Program-made: the position numbers and the translations under genes
Origin: Octopus sinensis
Taxonomy: Eukaryota
Assembly (NCBI RefSeq): GCF_006345805.1
Contig: NC_043023.1
Location: 5,518,001 to 5,582,000 of the forward strand
Length of the DNA stretch: 64,000 nucleotides
Reading direction: 5' to 3'
Part shown: positions 4,795-40,369 of the stretch, one piece after another
Position numbering within the stretch: the first letter of the stretch is position 1
Layout of the letters: each line of letters begins with the position of its first letter
The notes under the pieces: model-generated
The model's database searches: none
What the model was told of the DNA's origin: nothing
The model's input: the letters and a program-made list of their open reading frames with translations, nothing else

Positions 4795-4937
4795 CTACAT
4801 TCTCCATAGGTTAATTGTGATGAGTGCAAAAAGGGTGAATCCAGCAAAGACGCCTATACAAAGGCTCTTTGCCACACGCTTGATATTGCTGTTACTTTCT
4901 GATGTCGCAACTTTAGAATCTTTTGTTGTTTCATTAT
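4795..4937 (-). CDS. Copy 1 stalk and transmembrane exon ending LWRM*
   Basis: DNETTKDSKVATSESNSNIKRVAKSLCIGVFAGFTLFALITINLWRM*; TAG where copy 2 has TCG. Confidence 0.75.
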
Positions 4938-5094
4938 CTGCAAAAAATGAACAGTAAAGCATATATTTTTTGCTTTTGATAAAAAAAAAATTGTAATATT
5001 TACCAGGATTTACTATTTTGCCACATACCGAAGTTTAGAAATAGCAGCCATAGAACCTTAGCTATTTCTTCTACTCTGGTATCGTTAGCTCGTC

Positions 5095-5560
5095 CATACA
5101 TTTGATTTTGCCTCTCTTCAAGACTAACACACCACATTTCCTCAGTCCGAACTCCATTCTGATATCAGCACTGAAGGTAAATACTGTATCAACAAGGGAA
5201 CTGACTTGGCTTCATAAAGTTTGAGGTCATCCATGAATAACAAATGGTTGACTTTTTGTTGGTGGCTTTCAAATACACACCCATCTTTTGCTTTCCTCAG
5301 AATCAGTGTTAGTGGTATCAAGCACAGTACAAAGATCAGTGGGGACAGACAGTCCATTTGGAAGATGCCCCTCCTGATATCTACTGTCTGTAAACTTCTT
5401 CCATATGCTATCAGGTTCGTCCTCCCATTTGCCATACTTTTTCCAAGCAATCGCTCAACATTTGATGCAACCCTTCTGCTCACATAGCAGGACTCCATTT
5501 TTTCTTTTCCAGATGTTTGTACATTGACTCTGCAAGTATTCCAGTCAATAATTTCCACAG

Positions 5561-5561
<1 letters not shown>
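5095..5561 (-). mobile_element. R4/Dong-clade LINE RT fragment next to (TAA)n (duplicate at about 32690-33146)
   Basis: LIAYGRSLQTVDIRRGIFQxDCLSPLIFVLCLIPL..NHLLFMDDLKLY..FSADIRMEFGLRKCGVLVLKRGK; abuts the TTA repeat at 5562-5606. Confidence 0.7.
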
Positions 5562-5607
<46 letters not shown>

Positions 5608-6008
5608 GGCGGTGAGCTGGTAGAATTGTTAGCACACTGGACAAGATGCATTTTGTCCATTGCTATGTTCCGAGTTCAAATTCTGCCGAGGTTAACTTTG
5701 CCTTTAATACTTTCAAGGTCAATAAAATAAGTACCAGTTGAACACTGGGGTCGATGTAATCAACTCATTCCTACCTCCCCTAAGCTGCTCTTGTGGAATA
5801 ATTTGAAATAAAAATACTAATTATAATCATTATTATTATGAACTTGAGGTTGTTTCCTGGCAGAATTGTTACTGCACCAGAAAATATATTCAATAGTACC
5901 AGCCAAATAGACTCAAATTGATGTAATCAAGGAACCTGAAACTGATGACCTTGTGCATGAATTAGAAAGAATTATTATTGTTATTATTAGCAGAAGTCAC
6001 TTCCTTAC

Positions 6009-6260
6009 CTTCTTTCCCAAGAGTAATAGTTGCATTACAGGAGTTCTTGTCATAGAATCTCCAAAACAAATCCCCTCTCGTTATATTCTCGATGTAGAGA
6101 GTAGAAGTTCTATGAATCTGCCTAACTACATATTTGCCACGATCGCAATATTTCTTATTGCACTCGATACTACGGACCCTATTTCTCCAGACCACAGGCC
6201 TTTCCATATAGGGCATATCTTTAACCTCAAGATCGATACTTTGTCCGAGCACAGGGTTTC
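6009..6260 (-). CDS. Copy 1 Ig-like domain 2 exon (252 nt, open)
   Basis: GNPVLGQSIDLEVKDMPYMERPVVWRNRVRSIECNKKYCDRGKYVVRQIHRTSTLYIENITRGDLFWRFYDKNSCNATITLGKE; AG/GT boundaries. Confidence 0.85.
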
Positions 6261-6575
6261 CTGCAATAAATATATGAATCATTATTATTGACTAGTTTCT
6301 CATATGAAAGATTTCAGGATTCATTTTTATCATCATCATTGTTTCAACACCTACTTTTACATATCTGGAATCAGAGTTTTCTTTATATAAAGATTTGAGA
6401 CACTTCCTCTCGTGATATCACAGGTGATTGTATAACAAAGAGCCAGGACATTAAATAATGACGGTCATGGTAGGTGAACTTCAAGTAAAATTGTATGAGT
6501 TAAGAGAAAAAAATAAAAAAACAGAACTGAAAAGATAGTGTCTAGTTTAAGATGAGAAAAAGGTACTCCACTTAC

Positions 6576-6617
6576 CTTTCAAAATACCTATTTTGTACTC
6601 TTTTTTACATTGCCAAC
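6576..6617 (-). CDS. Copy 1 42-nt micro-exon (WQCKKEYKIGILK)
   Basis: Identical to the copy 2 exon, AG/GT boundaries. Confidence 0.75.
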
Positions 6618-6885
6618 CTATTCAAATAGAAAACAAAAATATTTTCAGATTTTAAATTTTTGATTACTCTTTACTCTTTTACTTGTTTCAGTCATTTGAC
6701 TGCGGCCATGCTGGAGCACCGCCTTTATTCTTTGTAAGCCCAGTACTTATTCTATCGGTCTCTTTTGCCGAACCGCTAAGTAACGGGGACGTAAACACAC
6801 CAGCATCATGTGGTTGGTAAGCAAGCTACTTACCACACAGCCACTCCTGCGCCTATAACAAAGATTATTATTTTTTTTTACAAGA

Positions 6886-8215
6886 TCATCATCATCATTT
6901 AACATCTGCTTTTCATACAAGAATGGTTTGGAGGGATTGACCAGAGCTACCAAAGGGGGGAGCTGCACCAGGCCCCAATTGTCAGATTTAGCATGGTTTC
7001 TATAACTGGATGCCCTCCCTAACATAACCCCTTTACTGAGAGTGCTGGGTGCTTTCCTCTGGTGCCCAAACACATGGCATAGGCATGTGTGCTTTTTACA
7101 AGGTATCAGCACAGAACTCTTGCAGGCCAATCTTCTTCACCAGGGAGACTGCCATTAACACTTCTACTGTGGAGTATGAGGTCTTCTTAGGTCCATCGAT
7201 GGGCTAGGCATCTTGGTCTTACTGTCTGAAAGGTTCAGCATCCTGATGTAATCCTTCAGTACTTTGTTCCATGTCCTCCTGGCTATCCAACTTACATGTG
7301 TTCCACCTAATTTGAGAGATTGGCTCATCTTCATAGAGCTATCAGCATCCATCTGCATCACTTGCCCAAATCAGTGTTGTCTGCTTTCTTACACATTGCA
7401 TCTAATTCCTCTTATGCCTTACTTCTCTCTCAATACACTAGACTCTGTCAAACACGAACCCATACATTACACATCCAGCAGAGCATACTAGCCTCATACC
7501 TCTCTAACCTTCACATATCATCTGCATTAATGGACCACATCTCTTTACCATGTAGAATTGCTGTCCGTATACATGCATCATACAATCTTCCTTTCACTCA
7601 GAGAGAAAAACCAAGAGGTAACAGCTCCCTGAATTTCCTCAATCCTGTTCTTATTCTAGTTATTACACTCTCTCTGTATCCTCCCCCACAACTAATTTGG
7701 TCTCCTAGGTAGCAGAAATTATCCACTACCTCTAATGAGCCACTAGGGCATTTGAGAGAATCAATTTCCTGAGTCTCTCTAGTTTTTATGGATCTTTTAC
7801 ATCTTCCACATACAAACACTACTTTCAATGATTACCTGCCTATTATACCACTGCACTTCTTTTGCATCCATAGCAGACAGTGGGTACACCATATGGAGTT
7901 TCTGCCTACAAATTGGGCTGGGTCACCTACATGAAGAGTGTAGGGTCCTGTCTGTTTTCTTGCTTACTAAGCTCTTAGTCTTTGTTAAATTAACCTTAAG
8001 GTCCTTAGATTCTAGGCTTTGCATCCACATCTGGAATTTCTCTTCTAGCTCTGATATGGACTCTGCTACAGAGGCAAGATCATCAGCATATAATTTTTGT
8101 AGGGGTTGCTGGTCTTCAATTTCTCTGTTATGGCCTAGAGGACAATAACGAACCTTGATAAGCACCTACCTGTACACCAAATTCTTCACTGTACTCATGG
8201 TGAACTCATGTTGAC
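6886..8215 (-). mobile_element. 5'-truncated, decayed RTE-clade LINE (copy 1 intron only)
   Basis: LYADDL..LKVNLTKTK..VDNFCYLGDQISCGGG..RIRTGLRKFRELLPL; (GAT)n tail at 6886-6898. Confidence 0.8.
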
Positions 8216-9464
8216 AGAATTATCTGTTATATAAAATCCATTCTGTCTGTCTGTGTGTGTCTTCTTGGATCTCGGGCATCCTCCATCCGATTGCGCTCAA
8301 ATTTGATATGTAGATACCGACATAATCAGGGCTTCTATAAGTCTTGAAAATATTACAAAAATCGTTTCCAGGTGAGAATGCGATCGATAAAGCCATTTAT
8401 GTCCTGCTTTTCTTCCGTCAACCTGTACATAACTGCACCTTCAATTTTTTGTTGTTTTTGTACTGCTTAAAGGCACGTTTCTTTCCTGCCAAGCTTACTG
8501 TTTAAACCATGTTTGTGTTCTCCCAGTCAACAGCCTAATCATTACTGGTACTTTAAACTCTTCTGTTGCATATTTGTGTGAATAAAATCGCTTTTCTTTG
8601 GAATAGGAAAAAAAAGTCTATCTTTATTTCTTCTTTTGCTGGTGTCTCAAATTTAGGTTAAATCAGTGTTTCTCAAAGGGGAGGCCTATGGGACGGTCGG
8701 ACAAGTTGTTTTGAGAAAATTTGGTTTAAATGTTTGACAACTCAGCACCATCCATTGGACGGGGTGGGGGCGTTTTGCTTGTACATTATATAGTGACAGA
8801 AGGTATTGAAAATGTGATTATATGTTTGAACACTAAGACATCTGCTATTTTCATCATCATCATCATTCCAATACCCATTTAAATGGGTCATATAGAATAT
8901 GTTTAGGTGGACAATAACGAAAAGGGGTGGGCTGAGGACTGAGCCTTGTTGAGCACTTACCTGTACACCAGATTCTTAGTTATACCTGTGGGTAACTCAT
9001 GCAGACAGAGATATACATTAAATACAGTGACATAAGGCATTGAGGCTCTATGTTTAAACACCATTCTTTTACTTGTTTCAGTCATTTGACTGCGGCCATG
9101 CTGGAGCACCACCTTTAGTCGAACAAATCGACCCCAGGACTTATTCTTTGAAGCCTAGTACTTATTCTATCAGTCTCTTTTGCCGAACCGCTAAGTTACG
9201 AGGACATAAACACGCCAGCATCGGTTGCCAAGCGATGTTGTGGGGACAAACACAGACACACAAACACACACATACATATATACGACGGGATTCTTTCAGT
9301 TTCCATCCACCAAATCCATTCACAAGACTTTGGTCAGCCCAAAGCTATAGTAGAAGACACTTGCCCAAGGTGCCATGCAGTGGGACTGAACCTGGAACCA
9401 TGTGGTTTGTGCATGAATTAGAAAGAATTATTATTGTTATTATTAGCAGAAGTCATTTCCTTAC

Positions 9465-9713
9465 CTTCTTCCTTCAAAGAAACCCTTGCATAGCGATATT
9501 TCTTGTCGTGAAAGTCCAATCCACATCTGCCTGTGATATATTTTTTATCAAAATAGTGGATGTATTACCACTCTGCTGAACTTCTACTCTGCCAGATTTA
9601 TAACATGTTCTATCACATTGAAAGCTTTCATTCACATTTTTCCAGGTAACAGGTCGCTCCATGCTGGGTATTTCTTCAGTTTGAAGAGTCATTTCCTCCA
9701 AGTACAAAACTTC
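9465..9713 (-). pseudogene. Copy 1 Ig-like domain 1 exon, 249 nt, two frameshifting deletions
   Basis: GGAGGAAATGAC vs GGAGGAACCATGAC (-2) and TTTCACGAC vs TTTCCGCGAC (-1); the phase-1 reading gives GSFVLGGNDSSN*. Confidence 0.8.
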
Positions 9714-10057
9714 CTGAAATAAATATATATATATCAATATTACAGACTAGTTTCCCATATGAAAGATTTCAGGATTAACTTTTCATCATCATCATTCTCT
9801 CAACATCCATTTTTTCCATGCTTGGGATCAAAATTTTCTTTATATACAATTCAAAACTCTTCCTGACATAATATCTCTCTTTTACTCTTTACTCTTTTAC
9901 TTGTTTCAGTCATTTGACTGTGGCCATGCTGGAGCACCACCTTTAGTCATGCAAATCGACCCCAGGACTTATTCTTTGCCGAACCGCTAAGTTATGGGGA
10001 CGTAAACACACCAGCATCGGTTGTCAAGCGATGTTGGGGGGACAAACACAGACACAG

Positions 10058-10088
<31 letters not shown>

Positions 10089-10470
10089 CATATATACGAC
10101 AGGCTTCTTTCAGTTTCCGTCTACCAAATCCACTCACAAGGCTTTGGTCGGCCCAAGGCTGTACTAGAAGACACTTGCCCAAGGTGCCACGCAGTGGGAC
10201 TGAACCCGGAACCATGTGGTAGGTAAGCAAGCCACTTACCACACAGCCACTCCTGCGCCAGACTATTGTATCCCAGACTATTGTAGAACAAAGAGCCTGG
10301 AGATTAAATGATGATGGTTATGGTTGGATTTCAAATAAAATTGTTAAAAATTATGTTAATCAGGAAAATTTAAAAACAAAAACATGACTATAAACTGAGG
10401 GGAGAGAAAGAAATAAAAGAGAGAACTGAGAAGATAGTGTCCAGTTTAAAATGAGAAACAGGTTTCTTAC

Positions 10471-10509
10471 CTTTTTTAATGATTTTGTAGACTCTTTCAC
10501 ACTGCGAGC
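10471..10509 (-). CDS. Copy 1 39-nt micro-exon (SQCERVYKIIKK)
   Basis: AG/GT boundaries; one synonymous difference from copy 2. Confidence 0.75.
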
Positions 10510-11258
10510 CTAAAAGAGATGAAGACAAAAATATTTTCAAATTTTACATTTTTGAGTATTATTGTCGTCGTCATCGGCGTCATTTAATATCCGTTTTCCA
10601 TGCAGAAATGAGTTGGACAGTTTAACCAGAGTTGACAAGATGGAGAGCTGCACAAGGCTCCAGTGGGATTTAGCATGCTGGGTGCTTTTATTTGGCACCA
10701 CATGAGAGCCTGTTCATGGCACTGCCATGTGCTTTTTGTGTGGCAATGGCACAGAAATCTTGCAGGCCAATCTTCTTCAGCGGGGGAGTGACCTTAACAT
10801 ATCTGCTGTGGAGTACAGCTCTCTTGAGTACAGCAAGGCCCCAAGCATTTTGGTTGTTTGTCATCTTGTCTGAAAGGCAAGTGGGAGATGTAGGGTGTGG
10901 GACGTTGTCTCACAGTTGCTGACAGTAAACCTCATTTCTCCCTCTGACTAAGGTTCATGAAGTATTTATTTACCGTCACGTTACAATACCTTGCTTTGAC
11001 AGGCAGGTTATGATAAATCCAAAAGCATGCGAAGAAAAGTTTGTGTTCTCTTCATTGTTTAGTAGTAAATACAGAAAAAGATAGAATGATATTGTAAGAG
11101 AACAGAATTAGAGCTAGTGACAGTTGTAAGGTGTGGGATGTTGTCTCACAGTTGCTGACAGTAAACTTCATTTCTCCCTCTGACTAAGGTTCTAGCTGGT
11201 CAGCCAATACTGAAGGATTACCCACTAAAAAATAGAGCAAAAACAAATGAAAACTTAC

Positions 11259-11310
11259 CATAAAAAAATGTAAACAAGGCAAAGAAGAAGATGAATAGCT
11301 GACTGTCCAT
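11259..11310 (-). CDS. Copy 1 signal-peptide exon (MDSQLFIFFFALFTFFY-G)
   Basis: Same as copy 2 with one fewer TTC codon; donor G|GTAAGT. Confidence 0.8.
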
Positions 11311-11452
11311 AATCTGAAAAATAAATTTTAAAAAGAGTGAAAACTTGTTGTCTCAGTCCCATCAATGGGAGGAACTGATAATATTTTAGGTCTTATTTTA
11401 ACTCCTTTTATTTTCAGAATTTCAGTCCCAATGTCTTCTGATGTCACTTACT

Positions 11453-11520
11453 CTCTCCTCCATTTCCCAAAACACAAAATAACAAGAAACTATTCATGTC
11501 AGATGTCTACTTAACAATCA
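11453..11520 (-). other. Putative upstream (5' UTR) exon of copy 1; equivalent donor in copy 2 at 39946
   Basis: Donor AGA|GTAAGT at 11452 pairs with the acceptor tttttcag 3 nt before the ATG. Copy 1 alone has an in-frame upstream ATG (MEERI-MDSQ). The 5' boundary is unknown. Confidence 0.45.
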
Positions 11521-12110
11521 TGATGACATTGCTGTGGTATTTAACATTAGGTTATATATATAAAAGGCATCGTGTGTGTGTACGTGAATGTAATTTATGC
11601 ATGTCCACAAATTAGCAAGCATGTCGCTCTAATTTTAGGAGGACATTCGTCATGATCCTAGCTATATTTTCGTCAAATTATTTTACGTATATTTCTAAGT
11701 GTATCTCTACTGATTTCCTATAGAATTTCAGGTAAACAGTGAATCTTATGATGTTTCATATTCAAATATGTTTATGTAAATGATGTTATTAGAGACAGAA
11801 AAGATAGGTAATAGGTGTATGTACATATTTCGAGAGTTGTTGTCCTTTCATCAGCACCACATCCTACCCATCGACTATCCATGATGCCTAAAAGTGTTAC
11901 ACAGTGGGACTGAACCTGGAATCATGTGGTTGGGAAGCAAACTTGCTTGGTTTTAATAGTATTAAAATAGATTGTATTTGTATTTTATGGTCAGATCAAG
12001 GATCTCATCAAATGCTGATGAAACCTGCTGCTCGTATCATGTAAACAAGTGAAGAAAATATATAGTGCATGTGTTTATTTGGCAAAAAAAATTTAAATAA
12101 CCATCCTGAA

Positions 12111-12151
<41 letters not shown>

Positions 12152-12156
<5 letters not shown>

Positions 12157-12366: not shown

Positions 12367-12453
12367 TTTATATATATTATATATTTATATTGTGAAATTT
12401 GATTTAATACCAAATTGAATTTTTCCTTGTAAGTTTGGAGTTTATACTAAGAT

Positions 12454-12485
<32 letters not shown>

Positions 12486-12574: not shown

Positions 12575-14560
12575 CTCTTATCATTTAACATCTGTTCTCC
12601 ACGCTGGCATGGTTGGAATAGTTTGACAGAAGGTGACCAGCTGAAGAGCTGCCTGGGATCCATATTGTTTGTTTTGACATGGTTTTAGTGGCTGGATGCC
12701 CTTCCTAATGCCAACCATTTTACAGAGTATAATGTGTGCCTTTTGTGTGGCACCATCACCAGTGCTTTTCACAAGGTACCAGCAAGAATTTGAACGCTTT
12801 TCTTTTGTGGGACCATGGTTTTAGGATCTCAACTCTGTTGTGGTGGGGCAGCTCAGCTCAAGTATAGCAATGCACCAAATTTCTTCCTGTCATCTCTTTC
12901 ATCAGGTTCAATATTTAAAGATCGGTTTTAAAACATTGACACAAGTCTTCCTGGGTCTCCTTCTTCACACCAACACGCAGCAGATGCATCATATAATCTT
13001 CCTTTCACCCAACAGAGGGAACAGCTCTCGGAAACTTCTCCATCCTATTTTTATTCTAGCAATTACACTTTAAGTACAACCTCCTCCCCCCTACTAATCA
13101 GAACACCTAGGTAACAAAAACTATCTGCAACTTCTATAATCACAGGGACATTTAAGGAAATCAATTTCTCGTGTAGCTGTGGTCGTTATGTCTCCTGTAC
13201 ATCTTCACATACAAACACTAATTTCTCTGTTATCCTTCCAACTATTCCACTACACCTCTTGCCTGCTTATAGCTTGCACTGGGTACATTGAACGGAATTA
13301 CTGCCTACACCCTTCCTACATACTGAATAGGGACATTTAGCTGATGGGCGAAAGGTCCTGTTGGCTTTCTTGCTTATTACAACCTTGGTCTAAATTTACC
13401 TTAAGACCATCTAATTCCAGGTTCTGTTTCCACACCCAGAATTTCTTTTCTAATTCTGTTACATATTCTGCTATGAGGGCAAGGTCATTAGCATGTAGGA
13501 GTTCCTCTCGGCTTCCAGTCTTACATTGCTCTCTTATGGCCCAGAGGATGATGAAGAATAGTAGGGGGCTGGGAACCAACCCTTGGTGGACACCTACCTA
13601 TGCACTAAATTCATCAGTGTACACACGGCTAACTCTCACTTTACTAACAGTACCCCTTTACATGGCCTATACTACTTTCATGGGCCATTTGTCTATCTCT
13701 AGCTTCTTCAGGGACCACTCTATCTCACAGCAGGGATCTCTGTTGAAGGTTTTCTGCAGATCAACAAATGCCAAGTAAAACTGCTTGTTCTTAGCTAAAT
13801 ACTTCTTTTGACTATGAAAATAGCATCTGCAGTATTTCTATCTGGGACAAAATCAAATTGCATTTCAGCCAGCCTAATTCCGCTCCTAATTAATTGTGCT
13901 AAAATTCTCTCTACAACTTTCATCCCCTGTTCCAGCATCTAGATACCTCTATAATTACTTCTAAGGCATCTCACTTGCTCTTGTAGCACCTGACTTCATT
14001 GTCATTAGGGATTACATCTTGAATCACCCAATTCACTACATTGGCGAGACTGTATCCAACTACCAGATATCTTAAGCATTTCGACAGTGACTCCTGATGG
14101 GTCAGGGGCCATTCCTATTTTCATATCTTTAATTGCTTTATCTATCATGCTGGTGTCAACCAGGACAGCTGGTCCCTTTGTAGGGTTCACATAAGGAAGA
14201 TTCCCTTCCTCCCGTTCATTCTCCACATCTAATAGTCCCTTATAGTAGCTCTTCCAAATTTCTTTTTCTCCAGAATCACTAATAGCAAACATACCATTAT
14301 CTGTCCATACACACTTCTCTTCCACATGTTGATTCTCTAACACAAATGTCTGGCAACCCAGAACACCTCAAGTCTCTCATCTTCATATTGTAAACTCCTT
14401 CCTTTCTGCTTCTGCTCTGGCAAGATATACCTGACGTTTAGCTCCTCTTTTAGTTGTCTGATATGGTTGTTTGCTCCCCCAATTCTTCCTGTCATTCCAG
14501 GCTTGTCTTGTCTCTTCCATAGTCATGACTAGCTTGTTCCATCACCAGGACTCTCTTGGG
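12575..14560 (-). mobile_element. Decayed RTE-clade LINE fragment
   Basis: AIKDMKIGMAPDPSGVTVEMLK, PSPLLFFIIL..ELLHANDLALIAE..LKVNL; many stops and frameshifts. Confidence 0.75.
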
Positions 14561-15507: not shown

Positions 15508-15932
15508 ATGGCTCCTGTACATCTTCACATACAAACACTAATTTCTCTGTTATCCTTCCAACTATTCCACTACACCTCTTGCCTGCTTATAGCTTGCACT
15601 GGGTACATTGAACGGAATTACTGCCTACACCCTTCCTACATACTGAATAGGGACATTTAGCTGATGGGCGAAAGGTCCTGTTGGGTTTCTTGGTCTTTGC
15701 TAAATTTACCTTAAGACCATCTAATTCCAGGTTCTGTTTCCACACCCAGAATTTCTTTTCTAATTTTGTTACATATTCTGCTATGAGGGCAAGGTCATTA
15801 GCATGTAGGAGTTCCTCTGGGCTTCCAGTCTTACATTGCTCTCTTATGGCCCAGAGGATGATGAAGAATAGTAGGGGGCTGGGAACCAACCCTTGGTAGA
15901 CACCTACCTATGCACTAAATTCATCAGTGTAC
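15508..15932 (-). repeat. Near-identical local copy of RTE fragment 13188-13620
   Basis: Direct sequence match over about 420 nt with one deletion of about 25 nt. Confidence 0.85.
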
Positions 15933-15949
15933 TGTTACTATTATTTATG

Positions 15950-27292: not shown

Positions 27293-27680
27293 GCAGGAGT
27301 GGCTGTGTGGTAAGTAGCTTGTTTACCAACCACATGGTTCCGGGTTCAGTCCCACTGCGTGGCACCTTGGACAAGTGTCTTCTACTATAGCATCAGGCCA
27401 ACCAAAGCCTTGTGAGTGGATTTGGTAGACAGAAACTGAAAGAAGCCTGTCGTATATGTGTATATATATGTATGTGGGTGTATGTGTTTGTCCCTCTAGC
27501 ATTGCTTGACAACCGATGCTGGTGTGTTTACGTCCCCGTTACTTAGCGGTTCGGCAAAAGAGACCAATAAAATAAGTACTGGGCTTACAAAAGAATAAGT
27601 CCCGGGGTCGATTTGCTCGACTAAAGGCGGTGTTCCAGCATGGCCTCAGTCAAATGACTGAAACAAGTAAAAGAGTAAAG
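27293..27680 (+). mobile_element. Full-length copy of the dominant tRNA-derived octopus SINE
   Basis: ggagtggctgtgtggtaag (A box)..gggttcagtccc (B box)..ggcaccttggacaagtgtc..tail agtaaaagag. Other copies, often partial: 150-470(+), 2641-2810(+), 6668-6853(-), 9068-9410(-), 9880-10258(-), 19935-20225(+), 34240-34460(-), 36060-36400(-), 52555-52710(-), 61685-62135(-), 63150-63527(-). Subfamily name (OR/OK) not assigned. Confidence 0.85.
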
Positions 27681-30177: not shown

Positions 30178-30238
30178 GATAAAACTCCAAGTTTCGGATG
30201 CCGAGGTGGAAATCCATGCCACTATCTCTTAAGTTATC
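30178..30238 (-). ncRNA. Hammerhead motif in copy 2 with core mutation CUUAAGA (G5 to U), predicted inactive
   Basis: Plus strand tctcttaagttatcc vs tctcttcagttatcc in copy 1 (position 30231). Confidence 0.55.
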
Positions 30239-30604
30239 CGGCCATCGGGAAAATGCTATGAAAAATGACCGTTACACAAAGGGAAATTACTGTCTTATTA
30301 ACCGCTATTAAGACAAAAGCACTATTCAAATGACTGCTAAATAAGGTTTGGGGATAAAAAGTTCATAGTATTCGCGTAAGCACACCCGTTTAGACCTACA
30401 CATGTGCGCCCACACACCCATGTCTGTATGCATACATTTATCCACCCTCACTAGAAAAACGTACACATCTTCACTTACATCCTTCATCAAATGTATATGC
30501 ATATAGGTACAAACCCACACACACATGTGGTCATTCGAATAGCACTTTTGTCTTAATAGCGGTCAATAACACAGTCATTTTTCATAGCGTTTTTTCGATG
30601 GCCG

Positions 30605-30665
30605 GATAACTGAAGAGATGGTGGCATGGATTTCCACCTCGGCATCTGAAACCTGGAGTTTTATC
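30605..30665 (+). ncRNA. Hammerhead motif, inverted arm of copy 2, core intact
   Basis: GATAA CTGAAGA ... CATCT GAAA C CTGGA G TT TTATC. Confidence 0.6.
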
Positions 30666-30911
30666 TTGGCTACCAAATAATTGTCACATATTACATTTAC
30701 AGATATGTGGCTTTCTGCTGAAGAGGCAACACCAGTCGTAAATAAATTTATTTTATTTACAAAAGATTGCCAAAACTATGCATAGTCCAGAAAGGAGAGT
30801 GTAAACGTTTTTATTTCTCTTTCCATTTCAGAATTACAACTATTAGTGGTTTGGAGTTTAACTGCTCTTTCTAGTGAGTCGGATGTCCTATTATGGCCAT
30901 CCCTTATATGT

Positions 30912-30965
<54 letters not shown>

Positions 30966-32382
30966 AAATGTGTTGTTGAAAAGGCACATAAATTCAAAAA
31001 CACGTAATTGTTTAAAATACATTTATTTTCAACGATTAGAATTATTTACTTTAATAAAATAAAATAATTTATTTCGAAAGGTTAACCCTTTAGCGTTCGA
31101 ATTAATATGTCATAAGTAATCCTTATTCATTTACATTTTAAAAAATTAATCTGGTATTATCTTGTAGCTTCAAGATTTGAAAGATGTAATTGTTTATTTT
31201 TAGAATGACATGAAAGTGGTAGGGTTGTGGGATGTTGTCTCACAGTTGCTGACATTAAATTTAATTTCTCTTCCTGACCATTGTCTTTAGTAGCTGCCAT
31301 GATTGGGATCATGGTTCTAGCGTTCCGCTCCCTAACTCATGGTAGCTGTCTCTGACTTGGTTGAGTTGTCACGAGCCAACTGACTAACTGTCTTTTTGCT
31401 TGAGGTTCTTGCTTTTATAACTATCCAGGATAGACCTATCGTTGAGAACAACGTGCTTTGTTGGTGGTACTGTGATATCTCTATTCTAGCTTTTGGTGAA
31501 GTAGAAGAGGTTAGAAAGGGTCAAGTGGTGAAGACATTATTTTGGCCTAGCTAAAGGCATCTGGAAAATGTAAAACTGCTGTCAGAGAGAAACCATTGTT
31601 CCATCATCATCATCACCATCATATAACGTCCGTTTTCCATGCTAGCATGGGTTGGACAGTTCAACCAGGGTCCAGGAAGCCAGGAGGCTGCACCAGGCTC
31701 CAGTCTGATCTGGCAGTGTTTCTACAGCTGGATGCCCTTCCTAACAACAACCACTCCGTGAGTGTAGTGGGTGTTTTTATGTGCCACTGGCACAGGGCCA
31801 AATGAGGCCGGCAACGGCCACAATTGGTTGGTGTTTTTTACGTGCCACCAGTACAGAAGCCAGTCAAGGATGACTGTGGTACTGCTACGCCAGCCATTGG
31901 GTATGACTCCATCATGAGCTACCTGGTTTACAATTTGGGTGACCAGACAATAGCCCACGCCACAAGATGTTTTAAGCATCTCAGCAGTGAATCCTGATGG
32001 CCTCATCTGATTTTTGATTTGTTAAAATACTAAATACTGGTGACTTTTTTTCGGTGGTCAAGCTTGTCGTTCTGCTTGATTGGCTTCCCTGTGGAAGTTA
32101 AGCTAGTTTGACCTATGTAGTCCCCACCACACCCTCCACATTTGAGAAAATAGATTAAGTTCTTCAAAGCACATTATGGTAAAAATTTGACTCAATTTAA
32201 ATTTGTATGTTGAGCCCTCAAAGGGTAAGATGCAAGTTCCACAGTTGGGGCCGTTGTACTTTTTGACTTGTAATTTTTTTTCAAGTTCTTGGAGTCGCTT
32301 TTCTCAGGTTTTAGGGATTTGATGCCATCGTGCAAATTATGGGGCACAAAAGAAAAAGCACCAACCAATCCTTTCTTGCATG

Positions 32383-32540
32383 CTATACCAATTTTTTCGA
32401 GATTTTCCATAGGCTAATTATGATGAGAGCAAAAAGCATGACTCCAGCAAAGAAGAATATGCAAAGGCTTATTGCTATACGCTCGCCATTGCTGAGTCCT
32501 TCTGATGTAGCAACTTTAAAATCTTTTGTTCTTTCATTAT
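32383..32540 (-). CDS. Copy 2 stalk, transmembrane and tail exon ending KISKKLV*
   Basis: ttttttgcag| acceptor in phase 1; hydrophobic run IAISLCIFFFAGVMLFALIIISLW followed by basic residues and a stop. Confidence 0.85.
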
Positions 32541-33146
32541 CTGCAAAAAATGAAATGTAAAGCATATATCTTTTGTTTTTGATAAAAAAAAAAATTGTAA
32601 TATTTAGCCACATACCGAAGTTTAGAAATAGCAGCCATAGAACCTTAGCTATTTCTTCTACTCTGGTATCCTTATCCCGTCCATACATTTGATTTTGCCT
32701 CTCTTCAAGACTAACAAACCACACTTCCTCAGTCCGAACTCCATTCTGATATCAGCACTGAAGGTAAATACTGTATCAACGAGGGAACTGACTTGGCTTC
32801 ATAAAGTTTGAGGTCATCCATGAATAACAAATGGTTGACTTTTTGTTGGTGGCTTTCGAATACACACCCAGCTTTTGCTTTCCTCAGAATCAGTGTTAGT
32901 GGTATCAAGCACAGTACAAAGATCAGTGGGGACAGACAGTCCGTTTGGAAGATGCCCCTCCTGATATCTACTGTCTGTAAACTTCTTCCATATGCTATCA
33001 GGTTCGTCCTCCCATTTGCCATACTTTTTCCAAGCAATCGCTCAACATTTGATGCAACGCTTCTGCTCACATGGCAGGACTCCATTTTTTCTTTTCCAGA
33101 TGTTTGTACATTGACTCTGCAAGTATTCCAGTCAATAATTTCCACA

Positions 33147-33179
<33 letters not shown>

Positions 33180-35096
33180 GGCGGTGAGCTGGTAGAATTG
33201 TTAGCACACTGCACAAGATGCATTTTGTTCATTGCTATGTTCCGAGTTCAAATTCTGCCGAGGTTGACTTTGCCTTTAATACTTTCAAGGTCAATAAAAT
33301 AAGTACCAGTTGAACACTGGGGTCGATGTAATCAACTCATTCCTACCTCCTCTAAGCTGCTCTTGTGGAATAATTTGAAATAAAAATACTAATTATAATC
33401 ATTATTATTATGAACTTGAGGTTGTTTCCTGGCAGAATTGTTACTGCACCAGAAAATATATTCAATAGTACCAGCCAAATAGACTCAAATTGATGTAATC
33501 AAGGAACCTGAAACTGATGACTGTGCATGAATTAGAAAGAATTATTATTGTTATTATTAGCAGAAGTCACTTCCTTACCTTCTTTCCCAAGAGTAATAGT
33601 TGCATTACAGGAGTTCTTGTCATAGAATCTCCAAAACAAATCCTCTCTCGTTATATTCTCGATGTAGAGAGTAGAAGTTCTATGAATCTGCCTAACTGCA
33701 TATGTGTCATTCTCGCAATATTCCTTATTGCACTCGATACTACGGACCTTATTTCTCCAGACCACAGGCCTTTCCATATAGGGCATATCTTTAACATAAA
33801 GAGAGATACTTTGTCCGAGCACAGGGTTTCCTGCAATAAATATATGAATCACTATTATTGACTAGTTTCCCGTATGAAAGATTTCAGGATTCATTTTTAT
33901 CATCATCATTGTTTCAACACCTACTTTTACATATCTGGAATCAGAGTTTTCTTTATATAAAGATTTGAGACACTTCCTCTCATGATATCACAGGTGATTG
34001 TATAACAAAGAGCCAGGACATTAAATAATGACGGTCATGGTAGGTGAACTTCAAGTAAAATTGTATGAGTTAAGAGAAAAAAATAAAAAAACAGAACTGA
34101 AAAGATAGTGTCTAGTTTAAGATGAGAAAAAGGTACTCCACTTACCTTTCAAAATACCTATTTTGTACTCTTTTTTACATTGCCAACCTATTCAAATAGA
34201 AAACAAAAATATTTTCAGATTTTAAATTTTTGATTACTCTTTACTCTTTTACTTGTTTCAGTCATTTGACTGCGGCCATGCTGGAGCACCGCATTTAGTC
34301 GAGCAAATCACCCCCGGGACTTATTCTTTGTAAGCCCAGTACTTATTCTATCGGTCTATTTTGCCAAACCGCTAATTAACGGGGACGTAAACACACCAGC
34401 ATCAGTTGTCAAGCAATGCTAGGGAGACAAACACAGACACACAAACATATACACACACATACATATATATATATAATATATATATACAAATTGAGATAGG
34501 GGTTGTAAATGAAACCCTCCATGTGATAACATATATCCAATATACTGCTAGTGAAGTACCCAACAAAGTTAATACATAAATGTTAAGAATTGCGATGCAA
34601 TTAATTCATTTACTGTATTATATGGGCAAAGGTAAAATGTTTTACCACAAATTAATAATACAAAATAAGAAAATGGAGAAATACATCCAAATCAATTATC
34701 AACTACCAGATAATACCCAATCACATACTTTATTAAACCACTACATAAGAACATTAAGGTCAAACATAATAATATAGAACAAAACAGTGTACATGAAGGA
34801 GTAATATGATACAATAAGTATAATATGTATAAGAGGATATAAATAAATATAAATATACACTGCATCTTACAGCTGTTTCGGCCATGCAGTTAATGGTGTC
34901 TCATTTTACTTATATTATCCATGTGTGATAGGTCAATATGTAGTTATAAATGAGACATTTACAAAAATATCCCAAGGCCTCTTCAGAAATTGTGAAATAC
35001 AAACCAAATTAAATCTACACCCATATAAGTGTGCGTACATACCCATAATATATCATGTACACATACATATGAGTGCATATACTCATACTCCTATAC

Positions 35097-35185
<89 letters not shown>

Positions 35186-38100
35186 ACATAGATATACATA
35201 ATAATATAAATAATATAAATCAATAAACATACATATGTTCCATATTCAATGTTACAGTTTTTCAACTTAATATTATGATATTACAATGTAGAAAACATAC
35301 ACATATTAATACCCAAATGCAGATATACAGAGTCAAGAGTACATTATATTAATTTATATTTATTTCCAAAATGTTATTAACGTTAACAATGTTAACATCA
35401 TTACCATTATCATTACCACTAATGCTACCAATATCATTATTCTTATTATTAATAACACTAATACTAGCAAAACAACATATAGATCACATTATTAGCAATA
35501 TAATAGCAAAACCAAGGACCACAATAGTATTACAGTACCATGCAAAGCATTAAATATCTGCATATACATACAAAATAAGAAATAAAAGCATATGGTTTAC
35601 ATGATATTAAGTTCCACAGGTGTACAAATGTACATATGACTGCAATTTATAACTTCAACTGTTACAGAAAAACAGTATTACGTTCAGAAATAGTTAAGAA
35701 TCGAACGCTAAAATATGATTGGCTTGTACATTTAAATTTAAATTACAATTGTCTTCTTTACGGTTGGTTTGTTAAGAAACATCCACACACGCATATTTGC
35801 AAACGTAAGCCTAAACGCACATACACAGACAAATCACAACACAAGAGATACCAGCTCACACACACACACATGCTTACATACAAATCTACACATATGTGTA
35901 GGTGGACAATAACGAAAAGGAGTGGGCTGAGGACTGAGCCTTGTTGAGCACTTACCTGTACACCAGATTCTTAGTTATACCTGTGGGTAACTCATGCAGA
36001 CAGAGATATACATTAAATACAGTGACATAAGGCATTGAGGCTCTATGTTTAAACACTATTCTTTTACTTGTTTCAGTCATTTGACTGCAGCCATGCTGGA
36101 GCACCACCTTTAGTCGAACAAATAGACCCCAGGACTTATTCTTTGTAAGCCTAGTACTTATTCTATCAGTCTCTTTTGCCGAACCACTAAGTTACGAGGA
36201 CATGCCAGCATCGGTTGCCAAGCGATGTTGTGGGGACAAACACAGACACACAAACACACACATACATATATACGATGGGATTCTTTCAGTTTCCATCCAC
36301 CAAATCCATTCACAAGACTGTGGTCAGCCCAAAGCTATAGTAGAAGACACTTGCCCAAGGTGCCATGCAGTGGGACTGAACCTGGAACCATGTGGTTTGT
36401 GCATGACTTTGTGCATGAATTAGAAAGAATTATCTCTTATTATAAAAGGCAGATTTTATCTGCCTCCCTTTGGGAGTTATACAAATCTACAATATAGGAT
36501 TTCTTCAATTACAATTTACCTTGCATTTTTGAGAGTACAATGCATCGCGTCATGCCAGGTCCAGTTTTTAAAATTTAAACTCCAATTAAGCAAAATTTAC
36601 AGAAAACTCACATTCTGGTGTGTGTGTCAAATGCTTTTCTTAGTCTGGTTTACAGCACACGCAAACGCACACACACAGTGGGCAACGAATAAAATGAAAG
36701 TAATTGACTTACTGTAGTGAGTGATTCTTTCACTCTGCCTCCCACTTCCTCTTTCAACACATAGACACGCAAATATATAAATAAAATTGTAAGCTAACGT
36801 GCGTGTGTGTGAGTGGGTGTGTGTGGGTGTGCGCGTGTGTGTGTGTGAGGGTGCGTGTGTGTGTGTGTGTGTGTGCGTGAGTGTGTGACAGGAAAGTTTT
36901 TTACGACGAATATAACACCTATATCCAAGTAGCAGAAAGATAAGACAGTAAGGTGTGATTTGAGGGAGATTTGGCTGCTATTTCTACCATGTCTAGCTGC
37001 CATGTAGGGGTCTCCCTCATAGGCTCATACATACATATATACATAGATAAGACAGTAAGGTGTGATTTGGGGGAGATTTGGCTGCTATTTCTACCAGGTC
37101 TAGCTGCCATGTAGGGGTCTCCCTCATAGGCTCATACATACATATATACATAGATAAGACAGTAAGGTGTGATTTGGGGGAAATTTGGCTGCTATTTCTT
37201 CCAGGTCTACCTGCCATGTAGGGGTCTCCCTCATAGGCTCATACATACATATATACATAGATAAGACAGTAAGGTGTGATTTGGGGGAAATTTGGCTGCT
37301 ATTTCTACCAGGTCTAGCTACCATGTAGAGGTCCCCCTCATTGGCTCATACATACATATATACATAGATAAGACAGTAAGGTGTGATTTGAGGGAGATTT
37401 GGCTGCTGTTTCTACCAGGTCTGTTAGGCCTTCTCATGTAAACTCAAGCTTTCTCATGCCTTGAACATAAGACCAAAGCAGAGAATGTATTCTTTTATTC
37501 TTCTGCTTTTTCCAGCCATTGGTCTGTGGCCATGCTGGGGCAATGCCTTGAAGAATTGTAGTTTAATGAATCAACTCGTTTTATTTTTGTAAGCATTGTA
37601 CTTATTCTATCTGTTTCCTTTGTCAAACCACTAGGTGACAGGGATGTAAACAAACCAACATTCGTTGTCAAGCAGTGGTGGAGGACAATCACAAGCACAG
37701 ACACGCACACACACACACATACATGCATACACATATACACACATACATACATACATACATATATATATATGTGTGTATATATATATTTTCGTCGCTTTGA
37801 GACCGCGACCTGTTCACTGACAAAAATATCGTGCTAACAGGTCGCGGTCTCAAAGCGATGAAAATATTTTGACAAATTAAATTTAAATGTTGAAGTGAAT
37901 CTAACGGTTTTTGTGTGTTTCTTAAATGGCTTATAAACACCTTCAACGCTGCAACTGTTTTCGTTCCAGCACACGGTCTCAGATCAAGTCACTTGCTATG
38001 CAAGTATATCTCTGTAACTATATATATATTTATATATATATATATATGTATATTGGTAAAAACAGTAAGATAACAAAAGAAAGAAAGAGACCTCAATATT

Positions 38101-39805
38101 ATGTAAATAGAGGAAATCTTTATATATAAAAGTGAGGTTGTGTGTCTGTCTCCTACGATTTAGATTCCTAACTACTCCCACATTTTGCGGTGCAGTTTAA
38201 CCAAAACCGGGTATCTTATAGTCGTGATTCATATCGAGACCGTCTGGGTATTAGCGCGCGTCTACGATGAGTCTACGATTTAAAAAAATTTACCATCAAT
38301 TTTTCCCATTTTTAATCCATTTTTGACATATATAAGGGAAGTAACTCTCTAAAATTTATTATTAAATCTCAGAACGTAAAAAGCTACAGTAACACCCCCC
38401 TTTGTGGTTAGCCATATTGAGATGGCTATTATACTTTACATCTCTAAAAATGCTTATATAATTATTTCCCTTACAAACCCGAGCAACGCCGGGCGATACT
38501 GCTAGTTGTTATTATTAGCAGAAGTCATTTCCTTACCTTCTTCCTTAAAAGAAACCCTTGCATAGCGATATTTCTTGTCGCGGAAAATCCAGTCCACATC
38601 TGCCTGTGATATATATTTTAACAAAATAGTGGATGTATTACCACTCTGCTGAACTTCTACTCTGCCAGATTTATAACATGTTCTATCACATTCAAAGCTT
38701 TTATTCACATTTTTCCAGGTAACAGGTCGCTCCATGCTGGGTATTTCTTCAGTTTGAAGAGTCATGGTTCCTCCAAGTACAAAACTTCCTGAAATATATA
38801 TATATATATCAATATTACAGACTAGTTTCCCATATGAAAGATTTCAGGATTAAATTTAAAAACAAAAACATGACTATAAACTGAGGGAAGAGAAAGAAAT
38901 AAAAGAGAGAACTGAGAAGATAGTGTCCAGTTTAAAATGAGAAACAGGTTTCTTACCTTTTTTAATGATTTTGTAGACTCTTTCACATTGCGAGCCTAAA
39001 AGAGATGAAGACAAAAATATTTTCAAATTTTACATTTTTGAGTATTATTGTCGTCGTCATCGGCGTCATTTAATATCCGTTTTCCATGCAGAAATGAGTT
39101 GGACAGTTTAACCAGAGTTGACAAGATGGAGAGCTGCACAAGGCTCCAGTGGGATTTAGCATGCTGGGTGCTTTTATTTGGCACCACATGAGAGCCTGTT
39201 CATGGCACTGCCATGTGCTTTTTGTGTGGCAATGGCACAGAAATCTTGCAGGCCAATCTTCTTCAGCGGGGGAGTGAACTTAACATATCTGCTGTGGAGT
39301 ACAGCTCTCTTGAGTACAGCAAGGCCCCAAGCATTTTGGTTGTTTGTCATCTTGTCTGAAAGGCAAGTGGGAGTTGTAGGGTGTGGGACGTTGTCTCACA
39401 GTTGCTGACAGTAAACCTCATTTCTCCCTCTGACTAAGGTTCATGAAGTATTTATTTACCGTCACGTTACAATACCTTGCTTTGACAGGCAGGTTATGAT
39501 AAATCCAAAAGCATGCGAAGAAAAGTTTGTGTTTGTGTTCTCTTCATTGTTTAGTAGTAAATACAGAAAGAGATAGAATGATATTGTAAGAGAACAGAAT
39601 TAGAGCTAGTGAGAGTTGTAGGGTGTGGGATGTTGTCTCACAGTTGCTGACAGTAAACTTCATTTCTCCCTCTGACTAAGGTTCTAGCTGGTCAGCCAAT
39701 ACTGAAGGATTACCCACTAAAAAATAGAGCAAAAACAAATGAAAACTTACCATAAAAAAATGTAAACAAGGCAAAGAAGAAGAAGATGAATAGCTGACTG
39801 TCCAT
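32383..39805 (-). CDS. Intact 6-coding-exon gene (copy 2) for a 265-aa type I membrane protein with two atypical Ig-like domains
   Basis: Exons 39805-39751, 38995-38957, 38788-38537, 34187-34146, 33830-33579, 32540-32383 (55+39+252+42+252+158=798 nt). All have AG/GT boundaries and phase-1 introns, and splice into one open frame: MDSQLFIFFFFALFTFFYGSQC-ERVYKIIKKGSFVLGGTMTLQTEEIPSMERPVTWK...KEEGWQCKKEYKIGILKGNPVLGQSISLYVKDMPYMERPVVWRN...GKEDNERTK...IAISLCIFFFAGVMLFALIIISLWKISKKLV*. Confidence 0.85.
33579..33830 (-). CDS. Copy 2 Ig-like domain 2 exon (252 nt)
   Basis: ttattgcag| acceptor, G|GTAAGG donor; GNPVLGQSISLYV...PVVW...ECNKEYC...TSTLYIENITREDLFWRF. Confidence 0.85.
34146..34187 (-). CDS. 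Copy 2 42-nt micro-exon (G-WQCKKEYKIGILK-G), start of domain 2
   Basis: tttgaatag| acceptor, G|GTAAGT donor, phase 1-1. Confidence 0.8.
36433..38505 (+). mobile_element. Composite Helitron insertion specific to copy 2 (inner short Helitron 38117-38505)
   Basis: A|TCTCTTATTATAAAAG start, hairpin + CTAG|T end; interrupts gaatta|ttgttattattag, which is contiguous in copy 1 (about 9425-9445). Confidence 0.75.
36939..37421. repeat. 107-bp minisatellite, about 4.5 copies, inside the composite Helitron
   Basis: gataagacagtaaggtgtgatttg... recurs at 36939, 37046, 37153, 37260, 37367. Confidence 0.9.
38537..38788 (-). CDS. Copy 2 Ig-like domain 1 exon (252 nt, intact)
   Basis: atttcag| acceptor, G|GTAAGG donor; GSFVLGGTMTLQ...PVTW...ECDRTC...TSTILLKYISQADVDWIF. 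Confidence 0.85.
38957..38995 (-). CDS. Copy 2 39-nt micro-exon (G-SQCERVYKIIKK-G): end of signal peptide and start of domain 1
   Basis: ctcttttag| acceptor, G|GTAAG donor, phase 1-1, homologous to the 42-nt micro-exon. Confidence 0.8.
39751..39805 (-). CDS. Copy 2 signal-peptide exon (MDSQLFIFFFFALFTFFY-G)
   Basis: ATG, hydrophobic run, donor G|GTAAGT; acceptor tttttcag 3 nt upstream of the ATG. Confidence 0.85.

Positions 39806-40336: not shown

Positions 40337-40369
<33 letters not shown>

Follow-up and report, generated by a model that had tools for sequence, protein, structure and literature searches.

We analyzed a 64,000-nucleotide stretch of the Octopus sinensis genome (contig C27, 5518001-5582000, from an assembly of 2.72 Gb; hereafter the window, whose positions serve as coordinates below), and we report that it appears to contain a recent tandem duplication of a six-exon gene for a two-domain, atypical immunoglobulin (Ig)-like surface protein that belongs to a fast-evolving recognition or adhesion family. 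We put the probability of this reading at about three in four. That the locus holds a real gene for an Ig-like membrane protein is, taken by itself, very likely.

A six-exon gene for a predicted two-domain membrane glycoprotein

The window has a GC content of ~38% and is rich in short and long interspersed nuclear element (SINE and LINE) and microsatellite sequence. Exons were found in it from minus-strand stop-to-stop open reading frames (ORFs) and then by tests of AG...GT boundaries, which gave, for the upstream and intact copy of the gene, six minus-strand exons of 55, 39, 252, 42, 252, and 158 nt. These sum to a coding sequence (CDS) of 798 nt, which translates into 265 amino acids (aa) and a stop codon. 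All internal boundaries have ag before and gtaag after the exon, the acceptors are of the polypyrimidine-AG type, and every junction is in phase 1. The initial annotation of this stretch had proposed six such phase 1 exons, forming a gene for a signal peptide, two domains, and a single membrane pass, and the canonical AG/GT sites and the length of the CDS bear this out.

Exon 1 (39751-39805) begins with the ATG at 39805-39803, encodes the signal peptide (MDSQLFIFFFFALFTFFY), and ends in phase 1 at a gtaagt donor; copies 98% identical to it lie at window ~11208-11365 and on the unplaced contig C11970. The four internal exons are all phase 1-1. Exon 2 (38957-38995), or mini-exon a, encodes (G)SQCERVYKIIKK, which supplies Cys22 and the A strand of domain 1 (residues 28-31 in the AlphaFold2 (AF2) model), and exon 3 (38537-38788) encodes the body of Ig-like domain 1, strands B to G, with W56, C65-x3-C69, W98, and F100; it was recovered as a 100% match in a whole-genome search with protein queries. 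Exon 4 (34146-34187), or mini-exon b, encodes (G)WQCKKEYKIGILK and with it the A strand of domain 2. It is the same in both copies of the gene, is the sole phase 1 candidate kept in both duplication units, and is homologous to mini-exon a. The body of Ig-like domain 2, with C163-x4-C168 and C204, is encoded by exon 5 (33579-33830), and exon 6 (32383-32540) encodes the stalk, the transmembrane helix ISLCIFFFAGVMLFALIIISLW, the tail KISKKLV, and the stop codon (32383-32385). Each ~97-aa domain is made up of a mini-exon of 13-14 aa and an exon of 84 aa.

The product starts with MDSQLFIFFFFALFTFFYG, which is signal-like, and runs from the signal peptide through mini-exon a, domain 1, mini-exon b, domain 2, the stalk, and the transmembrane segment to KISKKLV. 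It has a 14-residue hydrophobic N terminus, a 22-residue hydrophobic segment (hydropathy 2.95, peak at residues 235-258), five N-x-S/T sequons, and cysteines at positions 22, 65, 69, 119, 163, 168, 204, and 240; AF2 places helices at residues 3-19 and at the C terminus (model of the RefSeq protein P0003, see below). The motifs that the initial annotation had named were all found, namely PVTW and PVVW, TSTILL and TSTLYI, ECDRTC (CxxxC, domain 1), and ECNKEYC (CxxxxC, domain 2). Judged by these sequence features, the upstream product is probably a type I single-pass membrane glycoprotein with a signal peptide, two Ig-like domains, a stalk, a transmembrane helix, and a 7-aa basic tail.

The locus had been described as unrecognized, which is not the case, as it is already annotated in RefSeq as LOC115225395 (P0003, 260 aa, “uncharacterized”), spanning exactly 39805..4795. 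By its sequence, P0003 is a chimera of both copies: it consists, letter for letter, of upstream exons 1-4 and downstream exons 5-6, and its first 131 residues equal those of the upstream copy. A prediction from Octopus vulgaris has 88% identity to the upstream product. Logan contigs with the relatives P0026 and P0029 were considered as evidence of splicing and rejected; they are short, and at least P0026 runs through the donor into the intron. We note that, in the RefSeq proteins P0008, P0019, and P0052 and in Logan P0026 (L035), the donor of a domain exon is read through into the conserved intron start, which gives a C terminus ...GKE[IVM]TSANNNNNNSF, followed by a stop, with no transmembrane segment (compare window 38490-38536 and 33530-33578). 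These relatives could be secreted isoforms or prediction artifacts. Isoforms X8-X12 of RefSeq LOC115225115 (P0004, P0045-P0047) differ in the domain exons and mini-exons included, with exons spread over ~270 kb (C27 16.33-16.60 Mb) and sometimes two mini-exons back to back; they represent either extensive cassette splicing or chimeric models like P0003. No paper was found for the LOC identifiers, and no description of such an octopus Ig superfamily (IgSF) family surfaced in the portions of the literature available to us.

The domains are predicted to adopt a divergent I-set-like Ig fold

Structures were predicted by AF2 for full-length P0003, with 16 paralogue rows, and for domain 1 alone, with 35 family rows. 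In the full-length model (predicted local distance difference test (pLDDT) 80), an N-terminal helix is followed by two all-beta domains, a disordered stalk, and a C-terminal helix, and the single-domain model (pLDDT 90, predicted template-modeling score (pTM) 0.81) shows eight strands, to which we assign the order A B C C' D E F G; DSSP assigned no C'' strand in either model. When the two-domain model was compared with the PDB by Foldseek, 642 matches were obtained at E<=1e-3, and those listed were all Ig tandems (Fab chains, titin Ig81-83, Dpr4 Ig1-Ig2 (6eg0, among the top matches), NCAM2, and titin Z1Z2). For the single domain, the best match was obscurin Ig14 (2dm7, 25% identity), followed by antibody V domains and titin/obscurin I-set domains at TM-scores of 0.5-0.63 (0.60-0.63 for titin M10/obscurin Ig1, 4uow), and the matches listed were again all Ig domains. 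An Ig-like fold, for which AlphaFold and Foldseek had been named as the check, is thus what both programs returned.

At the level of sequence, 42 matches were obtained when 1.84 billion representative proteins were searched with a profile (A1) made from 16 exon peptides. The 31 strong ones were octopod where looked up (O. sinensis, Octopus bimaculoides, O. vulgaris, and Argonauta hians; two came from Logan runs) and carried no protein names. Next came Haliotis rufescens LOC124119024 (E=3e-16) and then Latimeria obscurin (8.5e-13), and the further matches included a lamprey “Ig-like domain-containing protein” and other giant proteins, which were matched over 7-14 stretches; the hmmsearch E values for obscurin and Ig arrays, 8.5e-13 to 1e-5, are summed over repeats. 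The shorter array proteins scanned (P0035, P0038, and P0041) are I-set arrays by Pfam. Fourteen obscurin-type I-set domains cut from the profile matches (A3) were aligned with A1 by hhalign, which gave a probability of 91% (E=1.1e-6). The alignment brings together strand B G-x-x-x-T-L-x-[C/T], strand C V-x-W, and strand E L-x-I-x-x-V, and ECDRTC falls in it as a six-residue insertion between C' and D. We conclude that, in these models, the domain is a divergent I-set-like Ig fold and not V-type. The likeness to V-type CD2/CEACAM domains proposed in the initial annotation has to be given up, given eight strands without C'' and a sequence affinity to the I-set of obscurin and titin; Pfam V-set matched one of 36 domains, at E=0.055. 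Its statement that no named family captures the gene stands, as Pfam matches are sub-threshold and the relatives are all “uncharacterized” or “mucin-like.”

Compared with the I-set (PF07679; obscurin/titin), the octopus domain shares the predicted A B C C' D E F G beta-sandwich but lacks the B-F disulfide (these positions hold hydrophobic residues, Thr/Ile and Phe), has Trp for the Tyr of the Tyr corner, and has a six-residue C'-D insertion with an invariant CxxxC as well as variable accessory disulfides. Further, whereas the I-set domains of obscurin and titin are cytoskeletal, the octopus domain is predicted to be extracellular and glycosylated, is split over two exons, and is sub-threshold in Pfam. 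Two other origins found no support in any search, namely that the CxxxC is the mark of a known redox or metal-binding family and that the exons are chance ORFs or derived from transposable elements. A BLAST of the domain exon against a phage collection gave no match.

The canonical cysteine pair is absent, and a CxxxC motif lies between C' and D

Trp-56 (Trp-154 in domain 2), the strand C Trp that hhalign pairs with the I-set Trp, does not vary in any family member aligned. The strand B Cys position is occupied by Thr-44 and, in most paralogues, by Ile (hhalign). Phe-100 is assigned to the strand F Cys position by motif spacing, not by alignment, and W98-x-F100 stands for the Y-x-C of strand F, with Trp in place of the Tyr-corner Tyr; the strand F motif of Haliotis is the near-canonical D-A-G-T-W-x-I. 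No Cys column was seen at the strand B or F position across 36 aligned domains, and neither domain of the gene has a Cys at these positions, in keeping with the initial observation that the canonical cysteines are lacking. Every one of the same 36 domains has C65 and C69, except that the domain 2 type has C70 in place of C69, which gives CxxxxC. Because three family members have no Cys beyond the CxxxC, C65 and C69 most likely bond together, and the pair would most likely form a local staple.

The other cysteines co-occur by subfamily, at 58+95, at 101+106, at 22+106 (the subfamily of this gene), and at 29+114 (Haliotis). In domain 2, C119 and C204 are the pair equivalent to 22/106. Domain 1 has C22 and an Arg at 106, where the O. 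bimaculoides relative P0019 has Cys; we infer from this pattern that Cys22, near the N terminus, is probably unpaired in domain 1 and that accessory disulfides vary by subfamily. Both domains of both copies have the CxxxC (CxxxxC in domain 2) between C' and D, W-x-F/I in strand F, and N-x-S/T-S-T-L at E, together with the exon layout of the family, a mini-exon and a phase 1-1 domain exon of 249-252 nt.

The gene recurs in both units of a segmental duplication

Self-BLAST paired window 156-12039 with 27380-41492 at 94-98% identity, in blocks with unit-specific repeats between them; the two intervals are the units of a ~27-kb segmental duplication. All six exons recur, on the minus strand, in the downstream copy. 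These are exon 1 (11259-11310, signal peptide, with an in-frame 3-bp deletion compared with the upstream copy), exon 2 (10471-10509, mini-exon a, one synonymous difference), exon 3 (9465-9713, domain 1), exon 4 (6576-6617, mini-exon b, no difference from upstream), exon 5 (6009-6260, domain 2, intact, with 12 aa differences from upstream), and exon 6 (4795-4937, stalk, hydrophobic C terminus, and tail RM, with the stop codon at 4795-4797). All 12 splice sites and the five exons besides exon 3 are intact. Two deletions, one of 2 bp at 9693|9692 and one of 1 bp at 9511|9510, disrupt the frame of the domain 1 exon, which reads SFVLGGNDSSN, followed by a stop, in the splice frame and is back in frame only near its end. 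The earlier statement that the gene is present twice is therefore correct at the DNA level, as all six exons recur, but only one copy is intact in the assembly. Similarly, the 7-aa tail described for the gene is that of the upstream copy, whereas the downstream stop lies five codons earlier and leaves a tail of 2 aa.

Six of the 12 aa differences in domain 2 fall within the C'-D loop (6110-6140 vs 33680-33710), where the downstream copy has CNKKYCDRGKYV and the upstream copy, like O. vulgaris, has CNKEYCENDTYA; these six changes occupy nine codons at the CxxxxC motif. The stalk/transmembrane exon (4795-4937 vs 32383-32540) differs by ~17% between copies (counted from the alignment), compared with 3-6% for the flanks and intron, and its synonymous and nonsynonymous changes are both in excess. 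No gene-conversion donor for the divergent downstream exon 6 was present in the assembly, where only three such exons exist: this subtype has three signal-peptide exons and three stalk/transmembrane exons, two each in the window and one each on C11970.

Window ~7.5-34.4 kb has a colinear counterpart, at 94-99% identity, in the 38.6-kb contig C11970, which runs from the 3' end of one unit across the intergenic region into the 5' end of the next and thus reproduces the tandem arrangement. The contig carries an intact downstream-type domain 1 exon, which implies that the frameshifts of the downstream copy may be allele-specific or assembly errors, and its signal-peptide and mini-a exons are identical to those of the downstream copy. 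Compared with the colinear window exons, it has 2 synonymous and 17 nonsynonymous differences, which may be allelic or paralogous, and the contig represents a third unit or else the other haplotype. We also observed one inverted segment in it (window 22342-24867) and more than 15 copies of a 95-bp tandem repeat that has 4.7 copies in the window. In O. vulgaris, the 415-aa model P0002 fuses two tandem copies that differ from each other, which indicates that the duplication is real and predates the split of O. sinensis and O. vulgaris.

The domain belongs to a large family with relatives in Haliotis

The size of the family was determined by searching two protein queries against the whole O. sinensis genome. 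Each query detected 76-78 domain exons, only one of them with a stop. About 45 family exons are on C27, at 3.2, 11-12.3, 15.9-16.9, and 19 Mb, a few of the others are on different chromosomes, and the remainder are on unplaced contigs, which are probably haplotigs. The pair in the window stands isolated and forms the most divergent branch, with 34-46% identity to the rest. Sixty-two exons were extracted from 67 places, five of which had no settable boundaries, and all 62 are 246-252 nt long, phase 1-1, with the acceptor tttatttcag and the donor gtaagg. The predicted family proteins have a signal peptide, one to four domains, a transmembrane segment, and short variable tails, in which no shared signaling motif is visible; some also carry a second, Cys-rich domain type. 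The initial annotation had the family as clustered and divergent, which it is, but the family is far more than the pair in the window, which proved to be an outlying branch. We note that several exons at C27 16.11-16.62 Mb form mirror pairs with equal scores, namely 16117255(+)/16617005(-), 16132919(+)/16601731(-), 16148566(+)/16585619(-), and 16218852(-)/16537642(+), which suggests a ~500-kb inverted duplication or an assembly artifact in the main cluster.

The sequence is conserved in three Octopus species, Argonauta, and Haliotis. A three-domain profile that included Haliotis rows found 36 proteins, of which ~30 were further ones from four Haliotis species; this search was limited by shared words and length and does not imply absence from other molluscs. 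Many of the Haliotis members lie on one contig, and they are named “uncharacterized” or “mucin-like,” the latter because of their Ser/Thr stalks. No squid, cuttlefish, or Nautilus protein was found in the search of 1.84 billion proteins, in which the representation of those proteomes is uncertain. The view that this is a cephalopod family was not upheld, as the domain subtype is also expanded in the four Haliotis species. The Haliotis proteins (for example, H. rufescens LOC124119024 and LOC124122840) are of the same subtype, in that CNPSC is aligned with ECDRTC and there is no canonical Cys pair; their strand E is preceded by N-x-S/T-STLTI, and their strand F contains DAGTW-x-I. Like the octopus proteins, they are built from a signal peptide, domains (one to five), a stalk, and a transmembrane segment and have clustered paralogues, many on one contig. 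They differ in being only ~16-25% identical to octopus domains, in their long Ser/Thr-rich mucin stalks, and in a Cys pair in strands A and G (TCPGG...VCQL) that takes the place of the accessory pairs seen in octopus. The Haliotis relatives are likewise uncharacterized and hence give no functional lead. What is new is this domain subtype and the parallel octopod and abalone expansions; IgSF receptors, disulfide-less domains, and lineage expansions are already known.

Domain exons have a conserved core and rapidly changing surface positions

Copy 1 and copy 2 differ by 7 synonymous and 41 nonsynonymous changes; the synonymous divergence (dS) of 0.047 matches intron divergence, and the ratio of nonsynonymous to synonymous divergence (dN/dS, omega) of 1.47 is not significantly above 1. 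Across the family, rates were counted in 22 branch-disjoint paralogue pairs from 58 distinct exons, which yielded 89 synonymous and 341 nonsynonymous differences and an omega of 0.96. The distribution per site was bimodal over 83 sites. Slow sites, with <=2 nonsynonymous changes, numbered 33 of the 83, compared with 17.6 expected if neutral, and include L42, R52, P53, W56, C65, C69, V77, S84, D102, A108, V110, and F112. Fourteen fast sites had at least 8 nonsynonymous changes (6.3 expected; P ~0.06 allowing for uncertainty in the synonymous proportion, pS). Fast sites are found at alternate positions in strands B (39, 41, 43), F (99, 101), and G (105, 107, 109, 111) and also in the B-C, C-C', C'-D, D-E, and E-F turns. 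We conclude that the core is under purifying selection, that surface positions change at or above the neutral rate, and that nearly all exons are open. As far as sequences can tell, the pattern is compatible with diversifying selection on a recognition surface, with selection that shifts often, or with a surface that is merely unconstrained.

In the downstream copy, the domain 1 and domain 2 exons are 60% identical, and their flanks are 86% identical over 100 nt upstream (9714-9813 vs 6261-6360) and 90% identical over 80 nt downstream (9385-9464 vs 5929-6008). The upstream flank motif cctgaaatctttcatatgg.aaactagtc...tttatttcag and the downstream motif gtaaggaaatgacttctgctaataataa recur in distant paralogues (loci L010, L024, and L029). 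This higher conservation of the flanks may be due to control of splicing or to exons that change faster than neutral sequence.

Repeats around the locus

Copies of a ~310-bp SINE-like repeat lie in introns and spacers at 156-470, 9065-9410, 19930-20226, 27325-27680, 36057-36400, and 63150-63500. In a large paralogue subfamily (L004, L009, L011, and L014-L021), the putative tail of such a repeat (ggactgaacc...aagcaaacttcttacctgatttctttatttcag) abuts the acceptor of the domain exon. Reverse-transcriptase (RT) ORF fragments, all on the minus strand, are found in the domain 2/transmembrane intron of both copies (5142-5561 and 32729-33148) and in the spacer (13337-14367 and 15587-15907). A longer LINE-like RT ORF (46386-48300, minus strand) adjoins a 1-kb (TAGA)n array (48272-49307), and ORFs at 60468-61660 (minus strand) resemble BED-finger/hAT transposases, by eye only. 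Two young tandem repeats are present, one at 24419-24860 (95-bp unit, 4.7 copies, 99% identity) and one at 36938-37422 (107-bp unit, 4.5 copies, 96% identity), the latter in the long intron of the upstream copy.

Discussion

Several known systems resemble the proteins described here. CD2/CD58/SLAM and CEACAM proteins are small type I or glycosylphosphatidylinositol (GPI)-anchored glycoproteins with a membrane-distal Ig domain that lacks the B-F disulfide; their genes lie in tandem clusters and evolve fast, and the proteins act in adhesion and recognition through Ig-Ig contacts. The CD2/CEACAM N-domains are V-set, with C' and C'' and no CxxxC insertion, whereas the octopus domain has no C'', and we regard the resemblance as analogy, not membership; neither the PDB-chain searches nor the exhaustive profile searches revealed a sequence link to CD2/CEACAM beyond the superfamily. 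Dpr/DIP/Beat in Drosophila, Alr1/Alr2 in Hydractinia, and the gastropod FREPs are likewise lineage-specific, clustered expansions of Ig surface proteins used for recognition. However, Dpr/DIP retain the canonical cysteines, and FREPs have a fibrinogen domain, which the octopus gene does not; the exhaustive profile search found no cnidarian or arthropod proteins of Alr/Dpr-type families. By analogy, we conjecture a functional parallel to these invertebrate Ig recognition families.

The most likely functional class of the product, as far as its sequence can suggest, is a fast-evolving cell-surface receptor for recognition or adhesion, to which we give even odds. Immune, neural, chemotactile, and gametic roles are unranked candidates, and the hints toward them are an omega of ~1 and the lineage-specific expansion. 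The protein would enter the secretory pathway and be anchored in the membrane, in the upstream copy probably by a transmembrane helix; the downstream-type C terminus, in which small residues and a short spacer come with a hydrophobic stretch at the very end, would also be compatible with a GPI signal. The conserved sequons that precede strand E or lie in the E-F loop would carry N-linked glycans, and the C65-C69 staple may take over part of the stabilizing role of the lost B-F disulfide. At the surface, the Ig domains would bind homophilically or to a ligand. Any signaling would presumably go through a partner because the tail has no motif for it.

Several observations weigh against our interpretation. 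With regard to the fold, the single-domain TM-scores are only 0.5-0.63, and the evidence is predicted, not experimental. The whole protein matches I-set (PF07679) in Pfam with 14.7 bits and E=0.033, against a gathering cut-off of 23.7, and none of the 36 domain instances exceeds any Pfam threshold, with sub-threshold I-set/Ig_3 matches only (best E=0.0077). Sequence searches of PDB chains with the whole protein and with the exon profile returned nothing significant. The disulfide pairing comes from co-occurrence, not from coordinates. With regard to function, an omega of ~1 is equally expected from relaxed constraint, the excess of fast sites is marginal (P ~0.06), and no recognizable signaling motif was seen in the KISKKLV tail; as the downstream copy ends 2 aa past the hydrophobic stretch, a GPI anchor is conceivable instead of a transmembrane helix. 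Finally, the sole annotated model joins two copies and matches neither, and exact-protein look-ups of the 265-aa product and of P0003 in public assemblies gave no record.

The downstream copy can be read in more than one way. A serious possibility, to which we would give somewhat less than an even chance, is that the locus consists of one functional gene and a decaying pseudogene, with the RefSeq chimera as an annotation artifact. The two frame-breaking deletions and in-frame stops in the downstream domain 1 exon, the earlier stop in exon 6, the copy-to-copy omega of 1.47 with its 41 nonsynonymous differences, and a divergence of ~17% in exon 6 that goes far beyond that of the flanks all speak for decay; on the other hand, the 12 splice sites and the other five downstream exons have stayed intact, the intact version of the domain 1 exon on C11970 leaves room for indels that are allele-specific or assembly errors in short runs, and the O. 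vulgaris counterpart of the downstream copy has an intact domain 1. It is also conceivable, though we think it unlikely, that the copies form one transcription unit, which starts at the upstream signal peptide and chooses between the upstream and downstream sets of domain 2/transmembrane exons. As all exons are in phase 1-1, duplicated exon sets can be mixed, which would diversify the receptor, and P0003 has exactly the composition expected, upstream exons 1-4 with downstream exons 5-6. However, predictors often make chimeras over near-identical tandem copies, and the upstream copy owns a last exon that contains a stop. Isoforms X8-X12 of LOC115225115, which mix domain exons over ~270 kb, and the intron flanks of the domain exons, at 86-90% identity compared with 60% for the exons, also favor such a unit, but conserved flanks are expected from young duplications or ordinary splice signals as well.

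It is very unlikely, in our judgment, that the duplication is an assembly artifact in which two haplotypes of one gene were placed in tandem. The units are indeed 94-98% identical, and the unplaced C11970, colinear at 94-99%, points to haplotype redundancy at the locus; however, C11970 itself spans the unit-to-unit junction, unit-specific repeat insertions distinguish the units, and the independent O. vulgaris assembly yields P0002 with two different tandem copies. The proposal that the exons are non-coding, or that the domain is not Ig, with frames that arose by chance or from repeats, is effectively refuted. It could draw on the lack of a Pfam match above threshold and on the abundance of SINE and LINE fragments in the region, but it does not sit with six exons that have canonical sites and a consistent phase, with ~78 paralogous matches that are nearly all open and 62 extracted exons that share their structure, with conservation over three Octopus species, Argonauta, and Haliotis, or with an AF2 pLDDT of 90, listed Foldseek matches that are all Ig, and an hhalign probability of 91%. 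Overall, we favor a recent tandem duplication of a gene for an Ig-like surface protein of a recognition or adhesion family.

A bolder proposal, which we consider improbable, is that this locus and the main cluster on the same chromosome (16.1-16.9 Mb) form a diversity-generating recognition system, in which symmetric phase 1 domain exons, flanked by conserved intron sequence, are combined by alternative or long-range splicing and/or exist as highly divergent alleles. If this were true, octopods would have a repertoire built on Ig domains for non-self, neuronal, or gamete recognition, and a like system would have evolved independently in abalone, starting from the same atypical domain. Cephalopods have complex nervous systems and, to our knowledge, innate immunity only; the surface-receptor repertoires that we know of in them are so far mainly protocadherins and GPCR-like chemoreceptors. 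The finding flags chimeric RefSeq models in tandem arrays, and a profile built on the signature of a C'-D CxxxC, a strand F W-x-F, and no B-F disulfide could annotate dozens of mollusc proteins now called “uncharacterized” or “mucin-like.” It adds a branch of the Ig superfamily that standard domain libraries miss, with ~78 domain exons concentrated on one chromosome, and the family provides concrete candidate recognition molecules, whether immune, neural, chemotactile, or reproductive, for tests of expression and binding.

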